The position numbers were made by a program, and so were the translations under genes. The notes under the pieces are model-generated. The model ran no database searches and was not told the origin of the DNA. It saw nothing but the letters and a program-made list of their open reading frames with translations. This document shows positions 5,301-50,108 of a stretch of 58,927 bases of DNA, one piece after another; position 1 is the first letter of the stretch, and each line of letters opens with the position of its first letter. This DNA is from Intoshia linei (taxonomy: Eukaryota > Animalia > Orthonectida). The stretch spans positions 1 through 58,927 of the forward strand of contig LWCA01000078.1 in NCBI GenBank assembly GCA_001642005.1, read 5' to 3'.

Positions 5301-8300
5301 GGTTTTCGACTTGCAATTCTTCCATATAATCCAAATCTATATAATACACGTTTCACCGTCTTCAAACTTGGATTTTTGGAATTATTCAAGTGTTGTTTGA
5401 TGTCCAAAGCTGTCAAGAATGGGTTTTTAATTGATTCCCTTTTTATAATAGCCTCTTCCCTAAATGTTAGCATGCGTTTTCTACTTGATCCTGGCACGTC
5501 AGTTATGCCTAACCCCTTTTTATATTATTTAATTATATTTTGAACCGCACATCGAGACATTATTAAGATTTTATTTATAAAAACCTGAATTTTTTCTTCC
5601 TTGAATAAGGACACAACATTGCATCTTTTTTTGTCACTTATGCGCGTCATTTACTAAAAAAATAATAATATTTAATTTATAGATCATTACATTTTAGTTT
5701 TTATTGAAATTTAATTAAATTTACTTGAAATTATGAAGGTGCCAAAGACTTCTGTCGTCAATATTTTTATTATCGTAAACAAAAGTGAGTGAGAGAGTAA
5801 CTTTTAATGACTAGTTTATGAAATCAGTATGGTTATATGTTTGATAGATGATGATTTAATTTTAAGTTAAATCTAAGAATTATTAACTTTATAATAGATT
5901 TTGATCAGAATGTGTAGGGTGATTAAGACTTATGTTGCGCACTGTAGAGTTAACTCACTGAATAAATCTGTATTATAATTTGTCTTGTAATTCTACGAAT
6001 GTTATTTTTTAAATGAACGAAAATACAGACATGCAACTTTAACTAAAATAAGTAAGGGTAAATTTGATAATTATAATAAAAATTAATAACAAACATTACA
6101 TTTTTATCATAATTGTAAAATCATCGTGATTGATGCATAAATAATACAAAACATTTCACGGACTCTTAGGGTCCGTGGACCCCAGTTTAAGAAACAATGA
6201 TATAAATAATCGTTTAATAGTTTCTATAAAATCATTTCTTAAATATACCCTTTAATCAAATAAAATATATTTTAGGAACTAATAAAATTTTACCACGAAA
6301 TAATGCGTGAGGTAGATGTTAAATCTGGAAAACTTGAAAAAAAAATATTGTTACTAACCGATTTATCTTGCTTACTTAATTTCGGAATGAAATTGATGAA
6401 ATCATTTTGTAAAATGGTGGATAACTGTGATTTTAACCATTCCGAAGAAGAAAAAAATGAATACGATTCAAATATTTACATTAGACATATGGAATACCAT
6501 TTTATGGATAATTTAATTTCCCAAAAATACCTAAATCACTATAATACATATACCGTATATTTTTTGGAACCATACTACGCCAAACTATTGGGCTACCGAA
6601 TTTTTGAAAATGTGTTACGTAAAAATTGGATTCAATTAGATTATTCAACTAGTTTGCATCGTTTTGATGTATATATAGATTTTATAAATATGGTTGTTCA
6701 TTTATTCTATATATACCCAACTGAATTTTATGAAATTATTTCTTATTTTTTTAAGGTTTGATTTATATTTGTTTGATATTATTTGTATTTTAGAATTCAA
6801 AGTTAAAATCAGATTTAGTGTTTCTTTTAGCTTTAATTTCCAGTAAATACGAGAAATTTAATATAGAATTACTAAAATACCTGCTACTCCAATGCAATAT
6901 TAACGATTTCATTAGTAAACCATTATGTTCCGTTTTGGATAGTTTATATGTCACGTATAAGGATAGATTTGTAAATTTAATTTCTTTGTTGATTAAAAGA
7001 AATAACGAACAAAACTGTGCCATTTTAAAATTGCTTGTAAATTCTGCTAAACAAGAAAGGTTTATTGCTGTTATTCTCAAAGCTATTTTTTCTGAAACGT
7101 TTGAGGAATTTGTTTCAAGTTCTGATGATTCGTATAGCACATCAAATATGTCTTGGATTCATAATTTAACTATCGATGAAATTTTTTTATTATATTTTGA
7201 ATCTAGAGGTGATTGGTAAAATTATATTTTTTTATAATTACATGCAATTTAGTCGACAACAATTTAAAGATATATTATTGTTTTATTGTCAATTGAAGGG
7301 TTCTTTGACTAGTCAATCTATTGGAACAAAATTAGTTTTAACCAATCCAGAAGTTTTTGATAAAAATGACTTGATTGATATTTTATTTTCCTTTTTGCAT
7401 GAAAATTTGGATATTAAAAATATTTTTCTTATCCCAATTGAGAAGTTTAATAGTGATATTCAAAGTGTCAATAAAAATTGCCAAATTTTGCGAAATACTC
7501 AGATTACTCATTTATGTATCAATATGCATAATATTTATAAAAGTTCTGGTGACATTTTGAGGTAAATTTATTTAATTTATAATATTATAAGTTTACGTGC
7601 TCTTTTTATCCAAATTAAGTGTGGTAGCGCAGTATAATCGTTTAATTTAGAGATATAATGATAGATTTGCTACGGGAGAATTATTTTTTGTTTGAAAAAT
7701 CATTTGTTTTTGTAAATGTATCAGAAAGGGAATGGATTTACGACGTTCGTATACTATCAAAATGTAACATTTATAGCATGGAAAATAGATTTAAAATTGT
7801 AAACCTCTATGAATGTCTACTAATTGAATTATTTACCAACCAACAACAAAGTATTTTATTTTAAAATACAGAATTTATTAATTTATGAAATATCTATATT
7901 TTACACCGTTATTAATATTATAACCGGGATGGACAAGTGTTAATTTAGGAAAAATACATATTTTTTAAAATTAATCAACAACAGTGTATAGTAGATTTAT
8001 TTTTATAACGGTTAAATGTTACCTATGCTTAATGTACACAAATTTTAGAACAATGTTCTACTCTTTTACCCTATATATACGACGGAATGCAAATGTTATC
8101 CAAAAATAAATCTACATTCCTGTATAAATATGGAATTACTCAATTATTAAATTTGGTAATGGAAAAGGTTAGTTTTTTTTAATTATTTTTATGGTATATT
8201 TTTGTGTTACATGTATCAAGATAATAATCATTATATTTTTAGGAAAATCGTTTCATTTTCATTGACAATATCAAAACAATTCCCAAGAAAATTACCGGAA

Positions 8301-11138: not shown

Positions 11139-11640
11139 TCAGTCGTTCCAGCAAATAATGTTCTCGTCTAATTGTGATTATAATTTTTAATTTTTTTAAA
11201 AATACCATCATTTTCGCTATCGGTATCATTTTCATCATGTTCATAATATTCTGTAAATATAATATTTAGTTGTTATTCATAACTGAGTCTCAAACAAAAA
11301 ATTTTAAGTCTAGCGAAAAATATATTTATTACACTTTTGAAATTATTATTTTATATTTTTAAACTTATTTCTCCAGTGATTATCAATAAGTATTGTTCAA
11401 TTACAGAATTAGTGAAGGTTATCTTCAACAATATAGTTTTTAATTATTAAAAAAATATCATTTCTCAAATTTTAACAGAGTTCAATGAACTTATGCCTTA
11501 CGACTTAAAATACTTATACCTGACTACCCTTGGATAACACTGGTTAACTAAAACTAATTGTTGTAAATTTAACCTTTATAAATTATTAAATTACCTGTTG
11601 ATATATCGCACAAGGATCTGTATAAAAATAGAGGTTTCAT
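11139..11640 (-). CDS. Spliced acidic micropeptide, copy 1 (about 39 aa): MKPLFLYRSLCDISTEYYEHDENDTDSENDDENIICWND*
   Basis: Exons 11640-11595, 11250-11206 and 11167-11139 with phase-1 GT-AG introns; in-frame stop upstream of the ATG. Paralog at 15404-15704 differs mostly at synonymous sites. A further candidate exon at 11547-11520 would shift the frame. Confidence 0.65.
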
Positions 11641-12749
11641 TATGATTTTCAAAATTTATTTAATAATTTAAACAAACGCACATTGTATAGTTTCAAAATG
11701 AGTTAAAAGGATATTGTGTACACGACTGGAGGAAATAATAGTTAATATTTGTATAGATTCTACTGGAATCTTAGATATTTTTATGTTCTTTTATTATTTC
11801 TATCTCTATTATTTATTATCTGACACGTGTTTGTCTATTTGTTCGGATGCATACGATCTATCTAACTTGTTTTGGCCAGTTCTATTCATCCAATTTTTAA
11901 CTTCTAGTATATTTCGGTTTCACATCCAATGATTATATATAAATCATTCAAAATTTTCAAAAATAATCGAATGGTTTATATAGGGCGTATAACCAAAAAA
12001 ATAGAAATACTTAAATCCAACCATTTTTAATAAAAAACTTATTGGAAAAATCCACTTTTACCAACATGCGATTCTAAAACACGCTCTCTTTTTATTTTGT
12101 ATATTGAATTAGATTGCCTTTTTTCATGTATATTTTGTCACAACCGACTAGTTATTCGAACACGGTTCAAAGCATAAACATTAAAACTTCAGCAATAAAT
12201 ACATTTAACTAAGTTTGTCAAATTTCGTCAGCACCATATGAAGACGATCTTCGAACCATGTTACAGAACTGTCCCAAGTTTGAATATTTTTCTAATTGGT
12301 TGTCAAACTTTTTTTAACAGTCCCCTCTTCACTAGTCACAGATTTATTAACTCTCACCTTCGCAATAAATTACCGCTGTCACCCACTGTAAGAAACCCTG
12401 GTTTAATTATTGGAAGGTCAATTATATTTAGTTGAAAGGTTGATAACTAATAATATGTAATATGTTATCAAAACGGAATGGTTTGAAGGCATTTCAAAAA
12501 ATTAAAAATCGTTTTCTAGTAGAATAATTTACAAAATTGTAAATGTTACAATTTCGTGAAAACTAAATCATGCGTGTTATATTCTTCATATGCAGTAGTT
12601 GGAAAATATAGAAATTCTAACAAATTGAAAATGTTACCACACGAATAGTTTTAAAAGATTATAATAAGGATTAATTTGCAATCAATTTTAAAATTCTATT
12701 AATTAAATTATATGCCTTAATAAAAAAATTATCTAGGACAATCTTATGT

Positions 12750-13110
12750 AGTGGTTATCAGAAGTGAGAGAGGCACCAAGGGTTTTTGGTAATTTTCAAG
12801 AAAATCGAAAAAATTTCAGAAGGAAATCAATCATATTTCAATTTAGATAAGCAAATATTACTGATTAAAATTCTTTTATATTCGACAAAGATTTCTACAT
12901 TAGAGATGTTAATTAAAAAATGATATTTTTGGAGAAGACTCATTGATTCAAAAATATGGTTAAAATCATTGTTATACCAGGCTGTGTGGAATCATTGAAT
13001 AGTAATAACATTTACATTTTGATCCAATTTAACCTTGAAACGGTACATTCTATTTCAAAAGAAGTCAATAGACTTTATTGGATTTTTTATACACGCCTTA
13101 AAGCATGAAT
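12750..13110 (+). mobile_element. Possible very degenerate Merlin/ISXO2-like transposase remnant
   Basis: Broken fragments ERGTK, STLEMLIKK*, WNH and FDP occur in the order expected for Merlin-type transposases; many stops and frameshifts. Confidence 0.3.
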
Positions 13111-13583
13111 GTTATACTTTCATAAATAAAAATCATTCAACAGCGGCCTGTAACTACATTTAAGAATGAACACGATCTCTTAAAATCTCTAATGTGAACT
13201 TTACATCGTTTTGTAGAAATCTAATGTTTATTCGTTACTATTTGTATGATATTTGAAAATATGATTTAAAAAACCAACTCCACTCTTGATTTAATATATT
13301 TAATGTTACAAAAATTATAATTACATGATAGTACATACATGTATAAAATAAAATTATATTTGAAATAGGTAAGATAACAGTTGTTCGAATTGATAAACAT
13401 TTAAGATTATAACCGGAGATTGAAAATTTGAATCAATAATAAATCAACTACAATAGTATATCACTTCTTTATTTATATTTTAATTATTTTAAGCAGACTA
13501 TTTCCACTTTATACTCTAAAGAGCTTGATATAAAAATTTTATTGACTTATGTAAAAAATTAAATCGTATCATCTTATAATATT

Positions 13584-13750
13584 CTAGGTTGACTGTTATG
13601 TACTACGTACAAACAGCACCTAGTTCTGCCAAGGGCATATTTTTATTCTACCAAAAACATAAATTCACGTTGAAAATATAATTGAAAATCCTACTATTCA
13701 CTATTATCAATCTTTCAAAAGAGTGGTTCCCAAACTTGTTTCAGGTGGAA
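13584..13750 (-). mobile_element. Helitron-like non-autonomous element 3' end (related copies 19735-19897 and 44591-44632)
   Basis: On the minus strand the hairpin CTGTTTGTAC-gta-GTACATAACAG is followed 5 nt later by CTAG. About 165 nt is closely similar at 19735. The copy at 44591 ends CTAG|T. Confidence 0.55.
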
Positions 13751-15403
13751 CCATCATATCACATTAATTTTTACTTTAAAGTGAAATATTTCATCTTAAT
13801 TTTTTAACTTTCATTTTTTGATTTATTAGACAGAATGTGTCTATATTGAGTATTTGTCTATATTGAGTATATCTATATTGATATATATTGAGTGTCTGAA
13901 TTATGCAATCTTAATTTTTTGTTTGTTAACATTTGTGTAAAGAAATTAAAAAAAAATTGTTATCCCATTTTTTTAATTTAATTTTTTTAGACAGAATGTG
14001 TGTATAATATTAAAAATAAAGTAAAAACAGTCCAATCCTAAAAATAAATAGCATAAATTCCAAAAAAAATAAAATTATCAAAACCTATTTTATTATTTTC
14101 AATGTGATGTTATATATTCAGTACCAATTTAATAACTACTTAAAAATACCAATTATTTATCAATAATTAACTGAATCTTCACTTTATAAACATATTTCAG
14201 GCAAATTTTACCAATATTGCTTAGATTCCATATTTTTAAAAATCATTTTGCTCGCTACATACAGACTAAAATAAGGCTCACTGTTTTAGAACAATTTTAT
14301 AGCTTATAAAAAACGAAGAGTATTGTATTTTAATAGTGACACTTTCAATTGTTCACTTTGAATAATATTTCAAAATTATTTTATGAAATAGTTTTGCTTT
14401 TATTTTTTGAAATTATAAATTATTTAATTTTCATGAAGTGAAAATTTCAATAAAATTAGTGTAAAAATTTTTTAAAAATGATTAGTCTCGTAAGGGTTAA
14501 GGATTCGTAAAATTGAAATTTTCACATAAGGGTTTGTGAAAATGAATTTTTCTCTTTAAGGTTGGTAAATAAATTGAAAAGTGGATTTTTAGTATAAATG
14601 GTTGGGTTTAAGTAAAAATGGTTGGGTTTAAAAATATTCTCATTATTAATTATATGAAATGATCTGCAAATTTTAGGTTAAGTGGAATGAAAATCAAAAT
14701 ATTTTAAGTTTGTCATTTGTTGTAATGCAGTGGTTTCCAGTTCAAATAGTTTACGGCCCCCTTTAAAAATATTGTAAAAAAAAGGATTTTTTTATTGAGG
14801 GTTTGTAAAATTTCATTTTTTATTTTGGATTTTGGACTAGGAAGTTGTTGCTTATAAAATTTATTAAAATATGATTTTTCAAAATACTATTGGAAAAAGA
14901 AGATATTTACCTTAATTTTGGTACATTCAAATGCTTAACTTTGAGTATTATCAAATGAGGAGAAATGAAATGTAGTATTAACAAGGGATGTTTAAAGAGA
15001 CGGTATATCATTTTGACAAAGAATAAAGACATACATCAAGGTTTTATGAATAATAAAAACAGTGTAGCTTCGTGTCAATAATTTAAATTCCTGAGTTGTG
15101 CGCAAAACAAGACTTTGCGAAACACTGTGTGACCTTATCAAACTAAATTAATTGACCTTGAATAAAACTACATATCTAATTCATTTTTGATAGAAATCCA
15201 GAATTTGATGTACCAATTACCACCTATATGAATTCATAAAAATATTTATCACCTAATTTTACGAATAGTTCGCAATGATATTATACTGGACCAAATAATG
15301 AACCCATTTGATTGAATTCATGGTTTTACTTTGAATGTTATTAATTTTAGAATATAGTGGCTACCGCGAGCTGCAAATTAAATAAATTTTAATTTTAAAA
15401 TGA

Positions 15404-15704
15404 TCAAGAATAGTAATTTTCTGGTTCTTTGTCATTTTCTGGTTTTTCGTCATTCCAAGAAATATAATTTTTATCTAATTTTCATAACAAATACACCATT
15501 TAAAATTTATAAAATACCATCTTCGTCGTTTTCGTATGGTTCTAAAATGTATTTTATTTATATAAATTAAGAATTATTTAAATAATATGTTAAAATTACT
15601 TTCTAAAAATAAAAATTGTACAAAATGCAGGTATTATTATTAAAATTAATAATATTACCGGTGGAAATATCACACAGGGATCGGTATAAAGAGGGTGGTT
15701 TCAT
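15404..15704 (-). CDS. Spliced acidic micropeptide, copy 2 (46-47 aa): MKPPSLYRSLCDISTE(K)PYENDEDDKNYISWNDEKPENDKEPENYYS*
   Basis: Exons 15704-15659, (15602-15600), 15541-15518 and 15474-15404. Same 46-nt first exon and intron phases as copy 1; in-frame stop 3 codons upstream of the ATG. Confidence 0.7.
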
Positions 15705-16894
15705 GATTTGGTTTTATTTATATGTTTCAGTTAACCCACATTATCTAATTTCTAAATAAGCTAATGAGCTATTATGTGCGCGACTGACGAAATTGCAACG
15801 GTAAATATTTATATATAATATATTAGTCTTTATACACTGCGTATTTGTATTTTTGACATTTATTTAAATAGATACTATCTATCTAACTTGATTTTGGCTA
15901 TTGCATTTAATTTGGAAACGTGACAATTTTTTTAATAAATAATTACAAAAAATTATAATATTCGCGTTCAATTTTTAAAGTATTAAACGATAGCAAAGTA
16001 AAAAAAATTGATCGAATAGTTGCAAAATGCAATGTTCCATAGTAAGGAATCCGTACATATCATGAATCATGATTAGTATTTGCTAAAGCTTTGCTGTTAT
16101 TGATAATTTAGAAACTTTACTTGATTAAATTTTACTTCAAATTGAGAATATATCCAAAATGGAGTTAAATTAGATTCCAATCAAGAATTGGTTGATTTTT
16201 TCCAAAAATATCAAATATTTTAAAACTTAATGTAAAATTTTTGTTAAATTAGTTTAGAGAATCGGATTTTTTTTATATTGTTAAAATCTCGAATTGTAAA
16301 TTTTAATGTTTTGTTTGATAAACCTTTAGTTACTCATTGTCGTATTTCAAAACTTTGTAAAATGAAACCTAGTCAGGTATCCTTTACTTATATAAATATG
16401 AATGTATGTGTGTGTTACCGTTTATTTAAAAAATTCAATATCTAATACAATTTTTCTCAGGGCGTGTTTGTATCTATTTTTCAGTTTCCAAATTTAAATC
16501 CTTCAGGGTCAAAACCACAATTTGACATTTTGTTTAAAAATAAAATCAACCCAAAAATTTAATAAAACTTAAATTCTGGGACGCGTTTTAAAATCATTAA
16601 CATTGTCATAAATTTCATCCTCACACTATCATGGTCAAAACCATAAAAAAATTATCCTATTTTAAAAAAATGAAACATTACTAAAATTTTATTAAACATA
16701 AAATCTGGTATAGTTTTTAAAATCATAAGCATTATTATAAATATCAACATCAAAAAAGTTCATTTTCATGATCAAAATCCCAGATTACTTTTTTTAAAAA
16801 AATAAAAATAGTCCTAGAATTAAAAAATTTTTATAAAAGTGTAAGTTAAGAAAATGAGCATATTCATGTCGTTCAAATAGATAAACCACCAAGT

Positions 16895-17410
16895 AAAATT
16901 GGCTAACATTCAGTCTAGCGACATAATCATAGATTTTGCTAATTAACCATATTATTGATTTTTTCATCCAATTTTTAAAAATTTTAAAGATAATTTTGGA
17001 ATCATAATTTGGTAGGGTTTTATACACATTTAGGGAATATTTTTAAAATTTTAAAATATCTTTAAAAAATGAATAAACAAATGTTCCCTTAAAACCCTTC
17101 ACAATTTTTGTCGAAAAAGTATCATAAAAATCGTTAAAAATTGGATTAAAAAAAAAAAATTGTTCCGTTATACCCTTCAAAATTTTGACCGAATAATTAT
17201 CATAAAAATCTTTAATAATTTGGTAAAAAAATTGTTCTTTTAAAAACTCAACCAAATTTTGGACCCAAAATTATCTTCAAATTCTTTTAAAATTGGTGAA
17301 AAAATTTTCCCTAAAGAAAACTACAAATATTTCTCAAAATAATCAATAATACATGTATGATAAATTAGTAAAATCGATGATTATATCGCTCTATAGAATG
17401 GACGTCCTAC
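16895..17410. mobile_element. Non-autonomous long-TIR (Mutator/foldback-like) element; related ends at about 3250-3630 and 45040-45260
   Basis: agcgacataatcatagattttgctaattaaccata at about 16917 is inverted at about 17350-17392; the same block recurs near 3270 and 45082. Confidence 0.5.
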
Positions 17411-18175: not shown

Positions 18176-20870
18176 ATGGTATGATGTTGTTATAATTAAT
18201 TGTACTGATTTTTTAAATTAAAAGAGTTCAACTGCAAAGAAAAGAAGAGGACTTAGTAATGATGAAAAACGGTCGAGAACTGTCAAATTTTTACAAAACA
18301 AGGTAAGTTTTAAAAATCGGACTTTTATGTTTTTTAATTAAAATTGTGAATAAAAAATTTGTCTAGTAGAGTTCTGTGCAACATTGTGAACATTTGTTCT
18401 TTATAATCTTTACTACATTACTAACAAGGTAAGTAATGCAAGTAAATGTTTTTGTTTGTGTCCTAATTTATGGTTCCCGATTCAAACAGTGTACGGGCCC
18501 TCATTTAAATTTTTTTTGAAAACAAAAGAATCATGAAATATAAAACATTTATTAAAAAATTAAAGGTTATTTATCATAAAATATGATAGAATTGTGTTTT
18601 TCAAAAATAAATTGGAAAAAAGAGATTTAAGGGTTGGTAAATTTGGGTTTTTATTTTTGGTTTTAGATTGGGAAGTTGTTGCTCATAAGATTTGGTTAAA
18701 TCGGATTTTTCCCTGGTTTGAAATGGTATTTTTTATTGAATTTTATTAATGGTGGGTAAAATTTGGATTTTTTAAATAATGCTATAGCGGTCATCTAGGC
18801 TTTGGGATAAATTCCCAACATCTGGCAACTCTGTAATAAATATTATAAATTCTCCTATAAAAATAAACAAAAGTTGATAAATTTTTTTTTATATATTTTA
18901 TTTTAATCTCACAGACCCCAGGTATATAGTTTTGGACCTAAACAGTCCAGGGATCTCAATCGGGAACCATTGGTCAAATTGATTTAAAAATGCAATTTAT
19001 AGGTCAGTTTTTTTTTGGATAATGAAATAAGATTAATTTGATTGTTCAAGTGCAAAAACGCAAATTACTGTTTTTATTATCCAATATTTTTGAACCATGT
19101 AAAACATGTCACTGTTTTTTTTTAGGGTAAAAATTTAATATAATAGTAAAATTACTAATTAAAATATCACATGTTTTAGATCTTCAATTATAAAAATATG
19201 TATATTGTTAAAATCAGAAAAATTAGCTGATTATTTTAATATATGTTACATTAAGTTTCTTTTTACCATGTTGGACAGTGTTATATAAGTAAGGATTAAT
19301 TATATTATATAATTATATTATTTTAAAAATTTTGAAAAATATCGATTTATTGAGAGGTTGTGCTCTATAGGAAATTTTCAAAACTTAATTTCTTTATACT
19401 AAAATCTTAGGATGAATGTTTTCAATTGAAAGATTTGGAAAAATTACTTTCTAAATACGAAGGCATAAATTCCATGAAAGTAAAAGAAATTTTAAAATCT
19501 CTTGTAGACGATGACATGATTGAATCTGATAAAGTTGGAATGTCAAATTATTTTTGGTGTTTTAAAGCCAAAAAAGTTGAAAAGGTTAAAAATTTTAATT
19601 CTTACATTAGGTTTTAACAAAATTTTTGTTAACGTTATCTTCAACACATGACAAAAAATATGTCTCTTACCGTCGCCTTAAATATACCATATAATGTTTT
19701 AAACCATATATTTTATGTCGATTATATATTATGACTTGGTTGACTGTTATGTACTACATACAAACAGCACCTAGTTCTGGCGAGGGCCCATTTTTATTCA
19801 ACTAAAAAAATAAATTCACGTTGAAAATCTAACTTATAAAGCATACTATTTACTATTATCAATCCTTTAAAGGAGTAGTTCCCAAACTTGTTTCAGGTAA
19901 ATTGTTAATGCAAACATTTGAAAAATATTGGTTGACAATATTTTTCAAAAAAAGGACAATTGGACTTTTGTTCCTTTTGATCCGTAAGATGTGAGTTTGG
20001 GAGGTTGAAATTTATGTTACTAAAACCCGGAAAAAAACTTTAATAGAAATGTGGACTATATAAAATTCTAAGACCGGTAGTTATTGAAATAAACGATAAC
20101 ACACAGACAAAAAAATCATATATATTTCAATTTATTTTGTTGTAAAATTATATTTAGTTAATTACTCTCAAGGAAAAATATACCAAATCAATAGAAGAAA
20201 AAGAATGCGAATTGAAAAATATTTCGGAAAAGATTGATAGTAAAAAGAATCTATGTCAAGATTCCGTAATTTTTGAAAACTTAACAATATACAGTGCAAT
20301 CAAAAAATATTTGATAATTTTTCTAATAATTATTTATAGATAATATAATAATAACCAGGTGGTTAACATACACACTAAGGCTATCCCTATTTAAACATAA
20401 AAACTGTATTATATTTGTAGAAAATAGAACATTAAAAAAGTTTAAAAAAAATAAAATATATATTGTGAAAATGGCTAATTGACTTTGAAAAATAATTTAC
20501 ATTAACTATTTGTACGTTTGTACGTTCACTAGATAAAACATAAATTGACAAATTTGTAGGAAAACCGTACCGACATTTTGACAAATCTTGGCAAAAATAA
20601 TGAAAAATTAGAAGAAATTACTAAAGAAATCAATACATATGAAAAAAATGACCCAGGTAAAATTAACGCATTGAAACAGGAGAACGCAGAAAAAGTAACA
20701 GAAATTAACAACACTACGGGTATAATTTGTGTATTTTAATATAATTAATGTTAATAAATTTAGACAACATATTTGCTTTGGTTTCATGGTCCACTAAAAA
20801 ATTTGGTTTTCTTTCAAAAGACATGTATAAAAATTTTGCGATTCCCACTGATCTTGATTATGTAGAATAG
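18176..20870 (+). CDS. MND1: Meiotic nuclear division protein 1
   Basis: ATG-only first coding exon (18176-18178), then [26 protein letters not shown]...[30 protein letters not shown] and TDNIFAL...[11 protein letters not shown]. Exons at about 18225-18302, 19411-19584, 20158-20265, 20560-20719 and 20764-20870. Confidence 0.95.
18468..18971. mobile_element. hAT MITE of the same family as 37942-38430 (opposite orientation); related copies about 21650-22190 and 35052-35690
   Basis: Ends atggttcccgatt / aatcgggaaccattg; internal sequence is the reverse complement of the 37942 element. Confidence 0.75.
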
Positions 20871-24445: not shown

Positions 24446-27400
24446 ATGTCAAAAAACAGTTCTTACGACAAATCTTTTTCCTATTCGAATCCTCGACTGG
24501 ATGTTATTTTGAAGAACGTTGAAGAGGCAAATGAAATTACATTTGAAACGTGTAAGATTCGTCAACACGAGAAACAATCTCTTCAAAATTTAAATAAAAG
24601 ATTACTGAATTATATCGAGCGCATTCATTTCCTCAATGCTCAAAACAAACAGCAGTCCGAATTGGTTGAAGACCTTCAGAATAACATGCAAAAGGAGATT
24701 GACGGTATAAAAGAGACTTATGAAGCTGAAATCAATGACATGCGAGAAAAGATTGACACTTTAACCAGTGATAATTGCCGTCTTTTAAACGAACTTGTAA
24801 ATTTTTAATGAAATCGTTTAAATTTGTATTGATCACATTAATGTTTCAATTTAGTCCGCCAACGAAGAAGATTTGGGAAATTTGCAGAAAAAGTAAAATT
24901 TTTTTAATTTAATCTGACGTTAAACTCTTTTTTAAATTTGTTTAGATATGGTGAAGTGGCCAATGAACTCAATGATAACAAACGCATTCTGAATCAATAT
25001 ATTGATAAAATGGCACGGTTAGAAGGGGATAACTACAAAACAAATCAACTCCACAAAAATCTTAGTGAAGACCATAAACGTTTATCCATGGACCATTCAA
25101 ATGCTATATGCACCGTTAAAAATTTGAAAAGTGTAATTTTTGCCACTAACGTTAATATGTCTAAACTTAGGAAATACAAGATTTGAATTCCCAAAAATCA
25201 GCTTCAGAAATCCGCCGAAAGAGTGTTATTGATGAATTAAACTTTCACAAAAGCGTTCACGATAAGGTTTTTTATTTAAAATATGAATAACTATAAATCT
25301 GTAAATAGGAACTTGACGGACTTCGAAAATCTGTTAGTCGTGATAAAACTCCCGAAAACCGCGAATACTGGAATAAGCAATTGGCAAATGCTTTAGATGA
25401 AATCCAAAGAATGCATGATGATAAATTAAAATCTATTAACAATGAATTGGAACGACAATACGGCGATAAAGTATATTTTTTTCAATTTTGAGATAATAAT
25501 AATAATGACATCCTAGCTGAACGATTATTCTAAAGAAAATAATAATTTGGACCAAGAACTTATGAAAAAGAAACAAACCATTCGAGACTTGCGTTCGGAA
25601 ATCGACAAAAGTCACGATAACATTAGCGATTTGGAAATGATGGTTATTTTTGATTATTAATCAAATGACATATTTTATTAGAAAGACCAATTGGATAATG
25701 AGGTGTCCAAATTAAAAAATAAAATTCAATTAAATCAATCAAACGTTGAAAAGGAACGAGAACAATTTGACGAAGAAAATCAAGTCTTGAAAGACCAATT
25801 GAAACGTTTATTGTCAGAAATTGATCTATTAACCGATACAAAACTTTGCCTCGAACTTGAAATTGCTGCCTACCGGAAATTATTGGAAGGAGAAGAAAAC
25901 AGGTATCTATAATGTTTCAAAAAACTATTTATTTGGTTTATTTTAGATTGGGAATACGGGAATTGGTTGAATCTTATGTATCAACTGAACGAAATAAAGT
26001 AGGCCAACGGTGTGATAACGCGTCTACCGAAAGAGACAGTATGAAATATTATGACACTAATAATAAGTTGAATGAAATAAAGCGTGGGGATTTCAATTAT
26101 AAATATGGTTAGCCTAATTATTTATACAATTGAATGTATATTTAATAAGAAACAAAAAATGTGAAATAGTGTAGATTACGTTCCTTTTTAGTTAATTTAA
26201 TCAAGTAGCTATACATTTTATTGTGTCTTATCTTTTGCATGTCTGTTTTTTTTATTTTTTGACAATTTATATGAACATTATAATTATTATAATGAATGCG
26301 ATCTGTCAATTTTTAATTTTGCTTTAAATTGTATTACTTTTTACTAAATTATGTCTCAGATTTATAATAACCACGTAAGTTTTGTTTCAGATCAAAATTT
26401 TTATTTATTACTTTTTATGTCGTATTATGATATATTTAAATTTTCGTTTTTTAATTTAATATCTTAATTTTTATTTTTCTTCCTGTATATATTGTTCCAG
26501 TTTTCGTTTCAGTTTTAATCGTTTTTGACTATATGTAATGTATTTATAAATCAATTATTTGAACATTTACACCTGGTCAATGTATTATATATTTATTTTA
26601 ATATTTATTAATGATTGACCCATTTTGTATTTTTTAATTTTTTTGATGCGTGTCAATGTTAGTACATTGTAGGATTTCAATAACACTTTAATTTCCATTA
26701 AAAGTTTGCTTTAGTATATTTTTTATCAACATGAATGTTAGTATTTTTAAAATTTAAATTTTGGTCGGTATTTATCCTGTTATGGTTCCAATCTCGATAT
26801 ATTGTAAAATATAATAAACGGATACGATAATTATCATAATTAGTATTACCAGTTATGTTATTTACGTCATGTTAAGCTGAGATTGATGTGACCTCTAAAT
26901 TTGTATAAATATAAATTTCCATAAATAAATTATGTATTTAATATTGTCACTATCATAACAATCTATAGATTCTAAAATAAATCCATCAGACGACGTCTAT
27001 GTTGAAAGTAAAAATAACCATACAAGTAAATATATACAATGACTGTTCGAATTGTAAGATAGAATAAGAATCGCAATATTCATTTCTACCATGTTAAGCT
27101 TACATTTAGTTAAATTCTCCATACATGAATAAGTGAGAGATCCGATAAGCAAGTTATTTTGGTATTAATCATTAGTAATAAATTCTAAATTATTATTTAA
27201 CAATTCTTTTGTATAAAAAGCTTACAAGTCTATGTATTAGCTTAAATGTATATTTAAATTTAAAATAGTAAATGTCCTTTTGGATTAATTATTTACCAGT
27301 ATCACCAATAATTTGCTCTTTACATAAATGTTCATTAATTAATTTTCTTTTAATAAATGACATAGTTCAACGATATGTACAAAGTTAATTATTTACGTCT

Positions 27401-31949: not shown

Positions 31950-33094
31950 ATGGAAAAAGAAAATTATTTAGTAGTTAGTAAATTCTATAGAGATGTTCCA
32001 GAAAATTTGAAAAAATTATTGGTAAAAATAATAAATGGTTTTTATGAATACACACATAAATTGATATTAAATGTTTTGTTGCGATATATTTGTGTTTCTG
32101 AACTGGACATGACTGAACTGCTGAAACTAGATAAAAAAGAGACACGAAAAGCCTTGTCTATTTTACAATCCGATAGAATAATTAAATGTAAAATACGAAT
32201 GGAAACGAACCCTGAAACAGCAAGTTCAACTAAACACACTTACTACTATATAAATTTCGGTTCAATACGCAACATTATAAGATACAAACTTGAAATGATT
32301 AGAAAAAGTATTGAATCAAAAAACGTCAATAACACTCAATTGGTAACATTTATTTGTCCAGAATGTACTAGCAAATACACAGACTTGCAAGTAAATTTAT
32401 TGATGGATATGGAAACAAACACTCTGAGATGTACATATTGTGGAGAGGAAGTTGTTGAAAATGACAACCAGGAAAGACAACATTCTAGAAATTTAATGGT
32501 TTCATTTAATGAACAATTGAAGGATATTTTTGAAATAATGCACACTAATCAGTCTTTTGATCTCAAAGAATATTTAATTGATCCGGACCCTTGTCCCTTG
32601 ACATTTTTACAAGATAGACATGCCGTCAAAACTGAAGAAAAACATAGAGGTGAAAAAACTAGCATAAAGGTTAACATTAAAGACACCACTATCGATTCTA
32701 ATGCTGTTAAAAAGACTCAGCCCGTCTGGATATCTCAAAGTACAGTTTTAGGAACACAAGATAATTCTGAATTTGTTCAAGACTCAAAAACTGAGACTTT
32801 AGATGAAAATGATTCCATTATGGCATCCTTAGTTAACCACGAAAAGACAGACAAAGAAGACGTACCAATTGACGATCCGTTTCTTGAATCTAAAAATGAA
32901 TTTGAAAGTAATTTTTTGTTTTACATTTTAAAATGTTTTCTTCAGATACACTGCAGAATTACAAAATTAATGTCCAAGGAAAAGCGTATCAATATGAGGA
33001 TATTACTGACGAACTAGTGTGTAAAATGTCAGCAGACGAGAAAAATATTTATATTAAGGCAGGTCAATTACTTTATTCTGACTATTATGTTTAA
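31950..33094 (+). CDS. GTF2E1: General transcription factor IIE alpha subunit
   Basis: YYYINF winged-helix motif and zinc ribbon FICPECTSKYTDL...LRCTYCGEEV. Removing intron 32908-32945 restores the conserved C-terminus VQGKAYQYEDITDELVCKMSADEKNIYI...*. Confidence 0.95.
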
Positions 33095-33233: not shown

Positions 33234-33985
33234 ATGGTCGCGCCCATTTTCAAGTATCAATTTAGGTAAATATTTGATGACTTGTGTTTGTAAACTAAAA
33301 TATTCAGATTCATTCTGATTGGGGACAGCACCGTAGGAAAAACTTCATTATTGAGATACTTATGCACTCAACAATTTGTACTGCAAGAAGAAGCTACAAT
33401 CGGTGTTGATTTTCATGCAACTCTTTTAGAAATTGAACCCAATTTATGGATCAAATTGCAAATCTGGGATACAGCAGGACAGGAAAAATTCAGGTTTAGC
33501 AATTATTTTTGTAAATATTTAAACTTTGTTATAGAGCAATAACTGCAGCGTACTATCGCAATGCAGTTGTAGTGATAATAGTGTTTGATATCTCAAATAG
33601 AAAATCATTTGATAACATTACAGAATGGTACAACGAAGCCTGTAAATATACCAAAACAGAAGAAACCATATACGCTTTATGCGGCCAAAAAATGGATTTG
33701 CATATGCAACGACAAATTTCCACTACTGAAGCCAATGATATGGCCGATTACCTGGGTATACCTTATTTCGAGGTATCGGCTAGGGAAGGAAACAATGTCG
33801 TCAATTTATTCACCACGTTATCTAAAACAGTCTACAGGTCAGTTGAAAATGGAAATTTCATTATCAGACCTGAGTGGAGTGGGGTTATTAAAGGCTTCAT
33901 GTCCCACCAAAATCAAATTGCATCCATTTTATCACCACACGAAATTGTCCTGGATAAAAAAAGAGAACGGCGATATTGCTGTTGA
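33234..33985 (+). CDS. RAB39: Rab39-family small GTPase, 3 exons
   Basis: MVAPIFKYQFRFILIGDSTVGKT...TIGVDF...EIEP...IKLQIWDTAGQEKFR...YYRN...CGQKMD...EVSA...RRYCC*. The YQFR/GDSTVGK start and non-N G4 motif are typical of Rab39. Confidence 0.9.
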
Positions 33986-49625: not shown

Positions 49626-50108
49626 ATGGATGAAGCAAAGACTCAATATACTTATATAATTTCAACTCAGATGGTTTTATTCTTGTTTGATTTGATAGTC
49701 AATACAGTAAGCTTTGCAATTAATATGTCACTTACCACCCTCTTTATTTTTCACGTTAGTCAAATATTGTGTATATTTTTTTCCCTTATCATTATTTTTC
49801 TCATGATTATTAATACTACTGCCTACAAACTTGGATTTCAAACCATAATCATCAAAAAATATCGCGGAACTATTGCTATCGGAATATTATATTTGGTATT
49901 AACAATAATTTTACACACAATTAATTTTGTTAATCAATGGCACGACGCTACAACATATAATTGGACTGTGCAAACGTTTATATTCTTTTTAATCCAAAGA
50001 ATTTGGTCAATTATTAATTATCATACATACAAAAGAGCATCTTTGTCGTTAGCAAAAAGAATTTATTATGATAAAAAATTTTGGATTCAACAAGACATTA
50101 ATTCATAA
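49626..50108 (+). CDS. TMEM138: Transmembrane protein 138 (ciliary), intronless
   Basis: 160 aa with Q-VLFLFDLIVN, INTTAYKLG...IIKKYRGTI...YLVLTIILH, YNWT...FLIQR...YHTYKRASLSL...YYD...W, matching the recalled TMEM138 pattern. Confidence 0.88.
   Translation: MDEAKTQYTYIISTQMVLFLFDLIVNTVSFAINMSLTTLFIFHVSQILCIFFSLIIIFLMIINTTAYKLGFQTIIIKKYRGTIAIGILYLVLTIILHTINFVNQWHDATTYNWTVQTFIFFLIQRIWSIINYHTYKRASLSLAKRIYYDKKFWIQQDINS

Follow-up and report, generated by a model that had tools for sequence, protein, structure and literature searches.

Among animal small open reading frame (smORF) genes, the Drosophila examples tarsal-less/pri and sarcolamban have intronless open reading frames (ORFs), are polycistronic or encode membrane peptides. 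Another kind of tiny product is represented by DSS1/SEM1, an acidic, disordered protein of 70-90 amino acids (aa) that stabilises multiprotein complexes, and W-acidic cargo motifs of the form [LM]-[DE]-W-[DE] bind kinesin light chain. Here we describe two neighbouring genes, A and B, on the minus strand of contig LWCA01000078.1 (C1970) of the orthonectid Intoshia linei, which was analysed over its entire length of 58,927 nucleotides (nt; hereafter, the window). Each is modelled as a three-exon gene encoding a tiny, strongly acidic peptide, and, judging from the nucleotide sequence, it is highly probable that both are real, selected and protein-coding. We moderately favour the explanation that a small, independent gene transcribed by RNA polymerase II was duplicated in tandem long ago, and that the microproteins of the two paralogues would act as disordered adaptors or regulators.

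Like the Drosophila examples, A and B have coding regions of fewer than 50 codons, fall below annotation cut-offs and are recognised by amino-acid conservation; unlike them, they are predicted to be monocistronic, with an ORF split by two phase-1 introns and a soluble acidic product, and it is paralogues, not orthologues, that supply the evidence. DSS1/SEM1 is resembled in the small size and strong acidity of the peptides, in aromatic residues including tryptophan set within acidic runs, in the lack of a signal peptide, and in a layout of two short conserved putative contact motifs connected by a flexible linker. The A and B peptides are, however, roughly half as long, and their LYRSLCDIST element has no counterpart in DSS1. 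The single tryptophan near the C-terminus, in a strongly acidic disordered context, recalls the W-acidic motifs of kinesin light chain cargoes, but in A and B it is preceded by C or S and followed by N, and read directly it does not match that consensus.

Gene structure and predicted peptides

Both models were recovered by a script check of the letters of the window (gene A, 11640-11139; gene B, 15704-15404; Table 1), and their frames are open through the joined exons over 39 codons in A and 46 in B. Each is thus a smORF in the sense of a complete ORF of no more than 100 codons with its own start and stop. Of the lengths given in the original prediction, about 39 aa and 46-47 aa, the first stands for A and the lower value of the second for B, while the optional extra K that would bring B to 47 aa is unsupported. 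The nearest in-frame stop upstream of the ATG lies at 5 codons in A and 3 codons in B (open frames of 28 and 36 aa), and as no acceptor separates these stops from the ATGs, the ATGs are taken as the starts.

The introns measure 344 and 38 nt in A and 117 and 43 nt in B. All four have GT..AG borders, in which the donors read G|GTAWTW and the acceptors have AG|A as their end, and both introns are in phase 1 in both genes, so that the matching intron phases (1,1) noted beforehand are borne out. The G+C content of the exons is 0.25-0.46, versus 0.11-0.22 for the introns. The modelled introns of 38 and 43 nt are typical, since two introns of a Rab gene in the same window, whose boundaries are set by its conserved P-loop and switch II motifs, measure 42 and 41 nt, and since the median intron of I. 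linei has been reported as 57 bp (PMC6543705).

Acidic residues (D+E) number 12 in A and 13 in B, against 2 and 5 basic ones (K+R), giving net charges of about -10 and -8, respectively. The tail of B carries an 18-nt in-frame tandem duplication (15416-15454, minus strand) that produces the pair DEKPEN/DKEPEN, and an END-x-x-x-EN unit is common to exon 2 of A (11207-11233, minus strand) and to the tail of B. It would seem, then, that short repeats added in frame are how the acidic parts lengthen.

Constraint on the encoded peptides

In exon 1 the two genes differ at ten bases, distributed over 9 of the 15 codons; seven of these codons differ synonymously, through the very codon pairs that had been reported, and the two changed residues (L/P and F/S) are adjacent. 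From Leu6 to Thr15 every difference is synonymous (6/6), and two of them fall at first codon positions (AGA/CGA, TTG/CTG), which is explained by protein-level selection only. Nei-Gojobori proportions for exon 1 are 0.76 for synonymous sites (pS, saturated) and 0.06 for nonsynonymous sites (pN). Two or fewer amino-acid changes were obtained from ten random substitutions in this exon in 0.016% of 100,000 trials (P = 1.6e-4), and 5-8 residues change when these differences are read in any of the five remaining frames.

Exons 2 and 3 were anchored at their acceptor sites and aligned without free gaps, and their 16 base differences result in five residue changes (P = 2e-5). The core of exon 3 taken alone gives P = 0.006 and the first seven codons of exon 2 alone P = 0.0009; the later synonymous pairs tat/tac, gat/gac and aac/aat of the original prediction are present. 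Over all 32 aligned codons the nonsynonymous rate (dN) is 0.13 and the synonymous rate (dS) is saturated. The codon tests therefore support, in all three exons, the purifying selection that had been proposed, and this selection is frame-specific and acts at the amino-acid level, a further hallmark of smORF genes.

Length differences point the same way as to frame: in the exons they are multiples of 3 (exon 2 measures 45 versus 24 nt, a difference of 21 nt, and the B tail repeat is 18 nt), and in the introns they are not in frame (227 nt between 344 and 117 nt, and 5 nt between 38 and 43 nt).

Age of the duplication and copy number

Corresponding segments of A and B were compared by global alignment against shuffles and scored as z. 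The strongest signals were obtained for exon 1 (z = 17.8; 36/46 identical positions) and for the upstream 300 nt (z = 11.8), followed by exon 3 (z = 3.8), intron 2 (z = 3.5) and exon 2 (z = 3.1), with values of -0.5 for intron 1 and 0.2 for the downstream 200 nt. Since intron 1 and the 3' flank no longer align, the duplication is old, and both a recent duplication and blanket gene conversion are excluded. Also, because unconstrained sequence has diverged past alignment, what can still be aligned is under constraint.

The genome assembly (41,603,068 bases in 3,520 contigs) holds two such loci and no others, as assessed with a degenerate exon-1 pattern allowing up to 2 mismatches and with protein searches using exons 1 and 3. 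Local tblastn with all exons detected no third copy in the window, and BLASTN against the own genome returned the query itself, the copies being too diverged from each other for this program. Tandem paralogues with a shared three-exon layout are supported; the "family" that had been announced amounts to two genes in one genome.

Upstream and downstream signals

The shared upstream blocks and the initiator-like CAGTCG motif noted earlier proved to be real in both copies (Table 1). The initiator-like sequence CAGTCGYGYACAYAATA occurs at 11728-11712 in A and at 15786-15770 in B. A third match to the initiator motif, on contig C2912, was attributed to chance, there being no similar gene downstream and a control pattern having also matched twice. 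About 240 nt upstream of the ATG both genes carry an identical distal block of 20/21 nt, which is found nowhere else in the 41.6-Mb genome and which, with its GATA-like AGATAG repeats, is a candidate shared enhancer.

The putative leaders of A and B are about 70% identical, although neutral sequence is unalignable between the copies. Both contain a conserved upstream ATG (uATG; AATGTGSGTT) that opens upstream ORFs (uORFs) of 7 codons in A and 4 codons in B. Downstream, AATAAA lies 40 nt past the stop of A and ATTAAA 11 nt past the stop of B, which in AT-rich DNA is weak evidence.

Table 1. Features of genes A and B and of other parts of the window.
Feature	Coordinates	Strand	Description
Gene A distal conserved block	11856-11875	-	CCAAAACAAGTTAGATAGAT, holds GATA-like AGATAG; exact pattern match, aligned with B
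Gene A TATA-like box	11742-11755	-	about -28 from A of CAGT; read from sequence, aligns with B box
Gene A initiator-like sequence and putative leader	11641-11728	-	CAGTCGTGTACACAATA; leader of 87 nt; uATG at 11683-11681
Gene A exon 1	11595-11640	-	ATG + 15 codons + 1 nt (MKPLFLYRSLCDIST), donor G|GTAATT
Gene A exon 2	11206-11250	-	45 nt (E YYEHDENDTDSEND), acidic; both borders in phase 1
Gene A exon 3	11139-11167	-	29 nt, D ENIICWND then stop
Gene B distal conserved block	15877-15897	-	CCAAAATCAAGTTAGATAGAT; exact pattern match
Gene B TATA-like box	15802-15815	-	TATATAAATATTTA, about -30 from A of CAGT; aligned with A box
Gene B initiator-like sequence and putative leader	15705-15786	-	CAGTCGCGCACATAATA; leader of 81 nt; uATG at 15741-15739
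Gene B exon 1	15659-15704	-	MKPPSLYRSLCDIST + 1 nt, donor G|GTAATA
Gene B exon 2	15518-15541	-	24 nt, E PYENDED; 21 nt shorter than A exon 2, in-frame difference
Gene B exon 3	15404-15474	-	71 nt, D KNYISWND, tail DEKPEN-DKEPEN-YYS, stop
Run of long ORFs	6303-7565	+	152, 133 and 129 aa; no Pfam match
Tandem repeat	16794-17322	-	74-78-nt unit, about 2 copies, 77-80% matches, overlapping two minus-strand ORFs of 70-77 aa with F-Y-D-x-[YF]-S-x-K-I-[VL]-K-G units; no Pfam match
MND1 helix-turn-helix exon	19426-19617	+	
Lamin-like intermediate filament exon	24446-24808	+	
TFIIE-alpha	31950-33017	+	
Rab-type GTPase	33234-33985	+	two introns, described in the text
TMEM138	49626-50108	+	apparently intronless

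The plus-strand ORFs at 6303-7565 probably represent exons of a large gene that evolves fast and is convergent with gene A. The window has a G+C content of about 25% throughout and carries invertebrate genes, and it does not resemble human DNA.

Family searches

Homology searches were conducted with separate exon pieces, the exons being joined for codon counting only. No Pfam match was found in the exon frames at E <= 10, a search with almost no power for pieces of 15-22 residues, and phmmer against the PDB (E <= 10) returned nothing but a chance 14-bit match to TLR4, again with little power at this peptide length. The unspliced 33-aa exon-1 frame of B, compared by HMMER with 1.84 billion proteins, gave no match at E <= 0.001, a level of significance that its 15 real residues cannot reach, and scans of metagenomes with two degenerate exon-1 patterns yielded no matches. 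Within the low power of exon pieces, the earlier statement that no family is recognisable therefore agrees with the Pfam, PDB and large protein library results.

Several named families were considered individually. For DSS1/SEM1 (PF05160) the exon frames showed no profile match, and the canonical DSS1 of this genome is located on another contig (C1728:14821-14988, 38.8 bits). The peptides do contain L-Y-R, but the locus has no profile match to the LYR-motif proteins (Complex1_LYR, PF05347), which are basic three-helix proteins of at least 60 aa, in contrast to the strongly acidic 39-46 aa of A and B. ANAPC15 (PF15243), a small subunit of the anaphase-promoting complex/cyclosome (APC/C), had no match at E <= 10 in a six-frame hidden Markov model (HMM) search of the genome and none in the Pfam scan of the exon frames.

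Alternative explanations

The exons could be parts of a gene that is longer or spliced in another way, either through splicing past exon 3 or with the peptide ORF serving as a uORF of a longer transcript. A GT just past the stop of A, followed some 60 nt later by a possible acceptor, would allow such an extension, and the 15-residue stretch encoded by exon 1, as the best-conserved piece, could be an N-terminal module. Exons 2 and 3, however, are themselves under amino-acid constraint, and nothing past exon 3 is conserved between the copies; a wider comparison for further shared exons, downstream of the copies or between them, gave AT-rich noise only. Exon 3 of B, read from the sequence, contains no GT before its stop and is therefore a terminal rather than an internal exon. 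Moreover, a plus-strand gene converges on A from downstream within about 1-3 kb, and the nearby minus-strand ORFs have no detectable Pfam domain. We consider this explanation unlikely.

Still less probable is that the transcripts are non-coding, the duplicated promoter, leader, regulatory element or RNA structure being what is conserved and the open frames being incidental. Conservation of leader and promoter (70-73%) does come near that of exon 1 (78%), and the 5' end of the leader may pair with exon 1 over 8 bp. Yet the substitutions are frame-specific and biased towards synonymous changes in all three exons, and indels in the exons preserve the frame. Folding the leader together with exon 1 yields a weak consensus structure (-4.55 kcal/mol) that contains 0 compensatory pairs, a comparison of two sequences with low power, and there is no Rfam match in the window.

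At a similarly low level, we find it improbable that the peptides are orthologues, diverged to an extreme degree, of some tiny protein already known, for which the best lead is CDC26, another small APC/C subunit. CDC26 is likewise small, and its only functional part is a stretch of about 25 residues at the N-terminus, after which comes a charged tail. The N-terminus contains K-P-x-x-L-x-x-x-L-x-D-I and then becomes acidic, which is similar in spacing to exon 1, with six identities at the extreme N-terminus, and no tool supports the match; the lead consists of this resemblance, the small size and the acidic continuation. The six-frame HMM search (E <= 10), a weak test, found neither canonical CDC26 nor ANAPC15 in the genome, while DSS1 was recovered, so that such a gene may be hidden; small APC/C subunits may be lost, intron-split or too diverged. 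Against orthology, the CDC26 profile (PF10471) matches neither the locus nor the genome and the exon-1 frames gave no Pfam match at E <= 10, with low power for 15 residues; phmmer against the PDB, which contains CDC26 chains, returned no CDC26 match at E <= 10; the estimated match of about 8-9 bits is at chance level; the peptide starts M-K-P and the conserved M-L-R-R (M-[LI]-R-R) start is missing; and a tandem pair is not what one would usually expect of CDC26.

We give an equally poor chance to host-directed or secreted parasite effectors, exported without a classical signal peptide. I. linei lives as an endoparasite, its plasmodium being located within the tissue of the host, and effectors are typically encoded by small duplicated genes confined to one lineage, but there are only two copies here and the selection is strongly purifying, not diversifying. 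As had been stated, no signal peptide is seen: read directly, the longest hydrophobic run is 5 residues (PLFLY in A, PPSLY at the same place in B, by eye). A secreted peptide precursor was rejected on the same grounds, no hydrophobic core of at least 7 residues being present.

Finally, a transposon fragment or dispersed repeat, which the original prediction had named as a possible refutation, or a chance ORF pair of the kind to be expected where short ORFs and splice-like sites are common, as in AT-rich genomes, is effectively refuted by the codon tests and by the copy count, since there are exactly two copies, adjacent to each other, in 41.6 Mb, with no repeat flanks around them and an exon 1 alignment far above shuffles.

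Proposed function and implications

We return to the explanation that A and B are old paralogues of an independent microprotein gene. In each gene, a TATA box with an initiator would precede a leader of about 85 nt, and two short introns would separate the three exons. The peptide would be largely disordered, would reside in the cytosol or the nucleus, and would serve as an adaptor or regulator carrying two conserved contact elements. The first of these would be the N-terminal 15-mer with its invariant LYRSLCDIST, in which L6, Y7, L10, C11 and I13 could form one hydrophobic helix face. The second would be the C-terminal D-x-N-[IY]-I-[CS]-W-N-D, hydrophobic and aromatic in an acidic context, and the linker between them would be acidic, would contain Tyr and would be under no constraint as to length (8 versus 15 residues). 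The tail past WND appears dispensable, because A stops at WND and B carries a repeat expansion there. Such a layout, that of a disordered bivalent adaptor, would dock on a basic partner surface and would function like the acidic microproteins of DSS1/Sem1 type, though not as a member of the DSS1 family.

Some points weigh against this explanation. All the selection tests are based on a single paralogue pair. The description as an "intracellular short-motif regulator", taken over from the original prediction, derives from composition and motif layout only, and WND fits no nameable motif class. Also, the main ORF may be translated less, or under regulation, owing to the conserved uATG, or else this uATG may precede the true start site. 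Granted that the genes are real, selected and coding, a disordered adaptor mechanism is, in our estimate, close to an even proposition but no better.

With comparable reserve, just short of even odds, we propose that A and B represent an orthonectid-restricted family of spliced, translated "motif-only" microproteins, consisting of two docking motifs and an acidic linker and having no homologue in described families; they would be dedicated regulators, retained as a pair in an animal genome that is among the most reduced. Conserved microproteins are already a known class, and no new principle is involved; the genes are apparently a lineage-restricted addition to it. What they illustrate is that spliced ORFs of 39-46 codons can be shown to be protein-coding from sequence alone, an ancient within-genome duplicate standing in for the other species on which codon-level evidence normally depends. 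Genes of this type lie under every ORF-length filter and are probably missing in annotations of compact, fast-evolving parasite genomes. If expressed, the peptides could easily be synthesised for partner screens, and A and B would be candidates for regulators specific to their lineage, in an animal from which a large part of the standard bilaterian gene repertoire has been lost.

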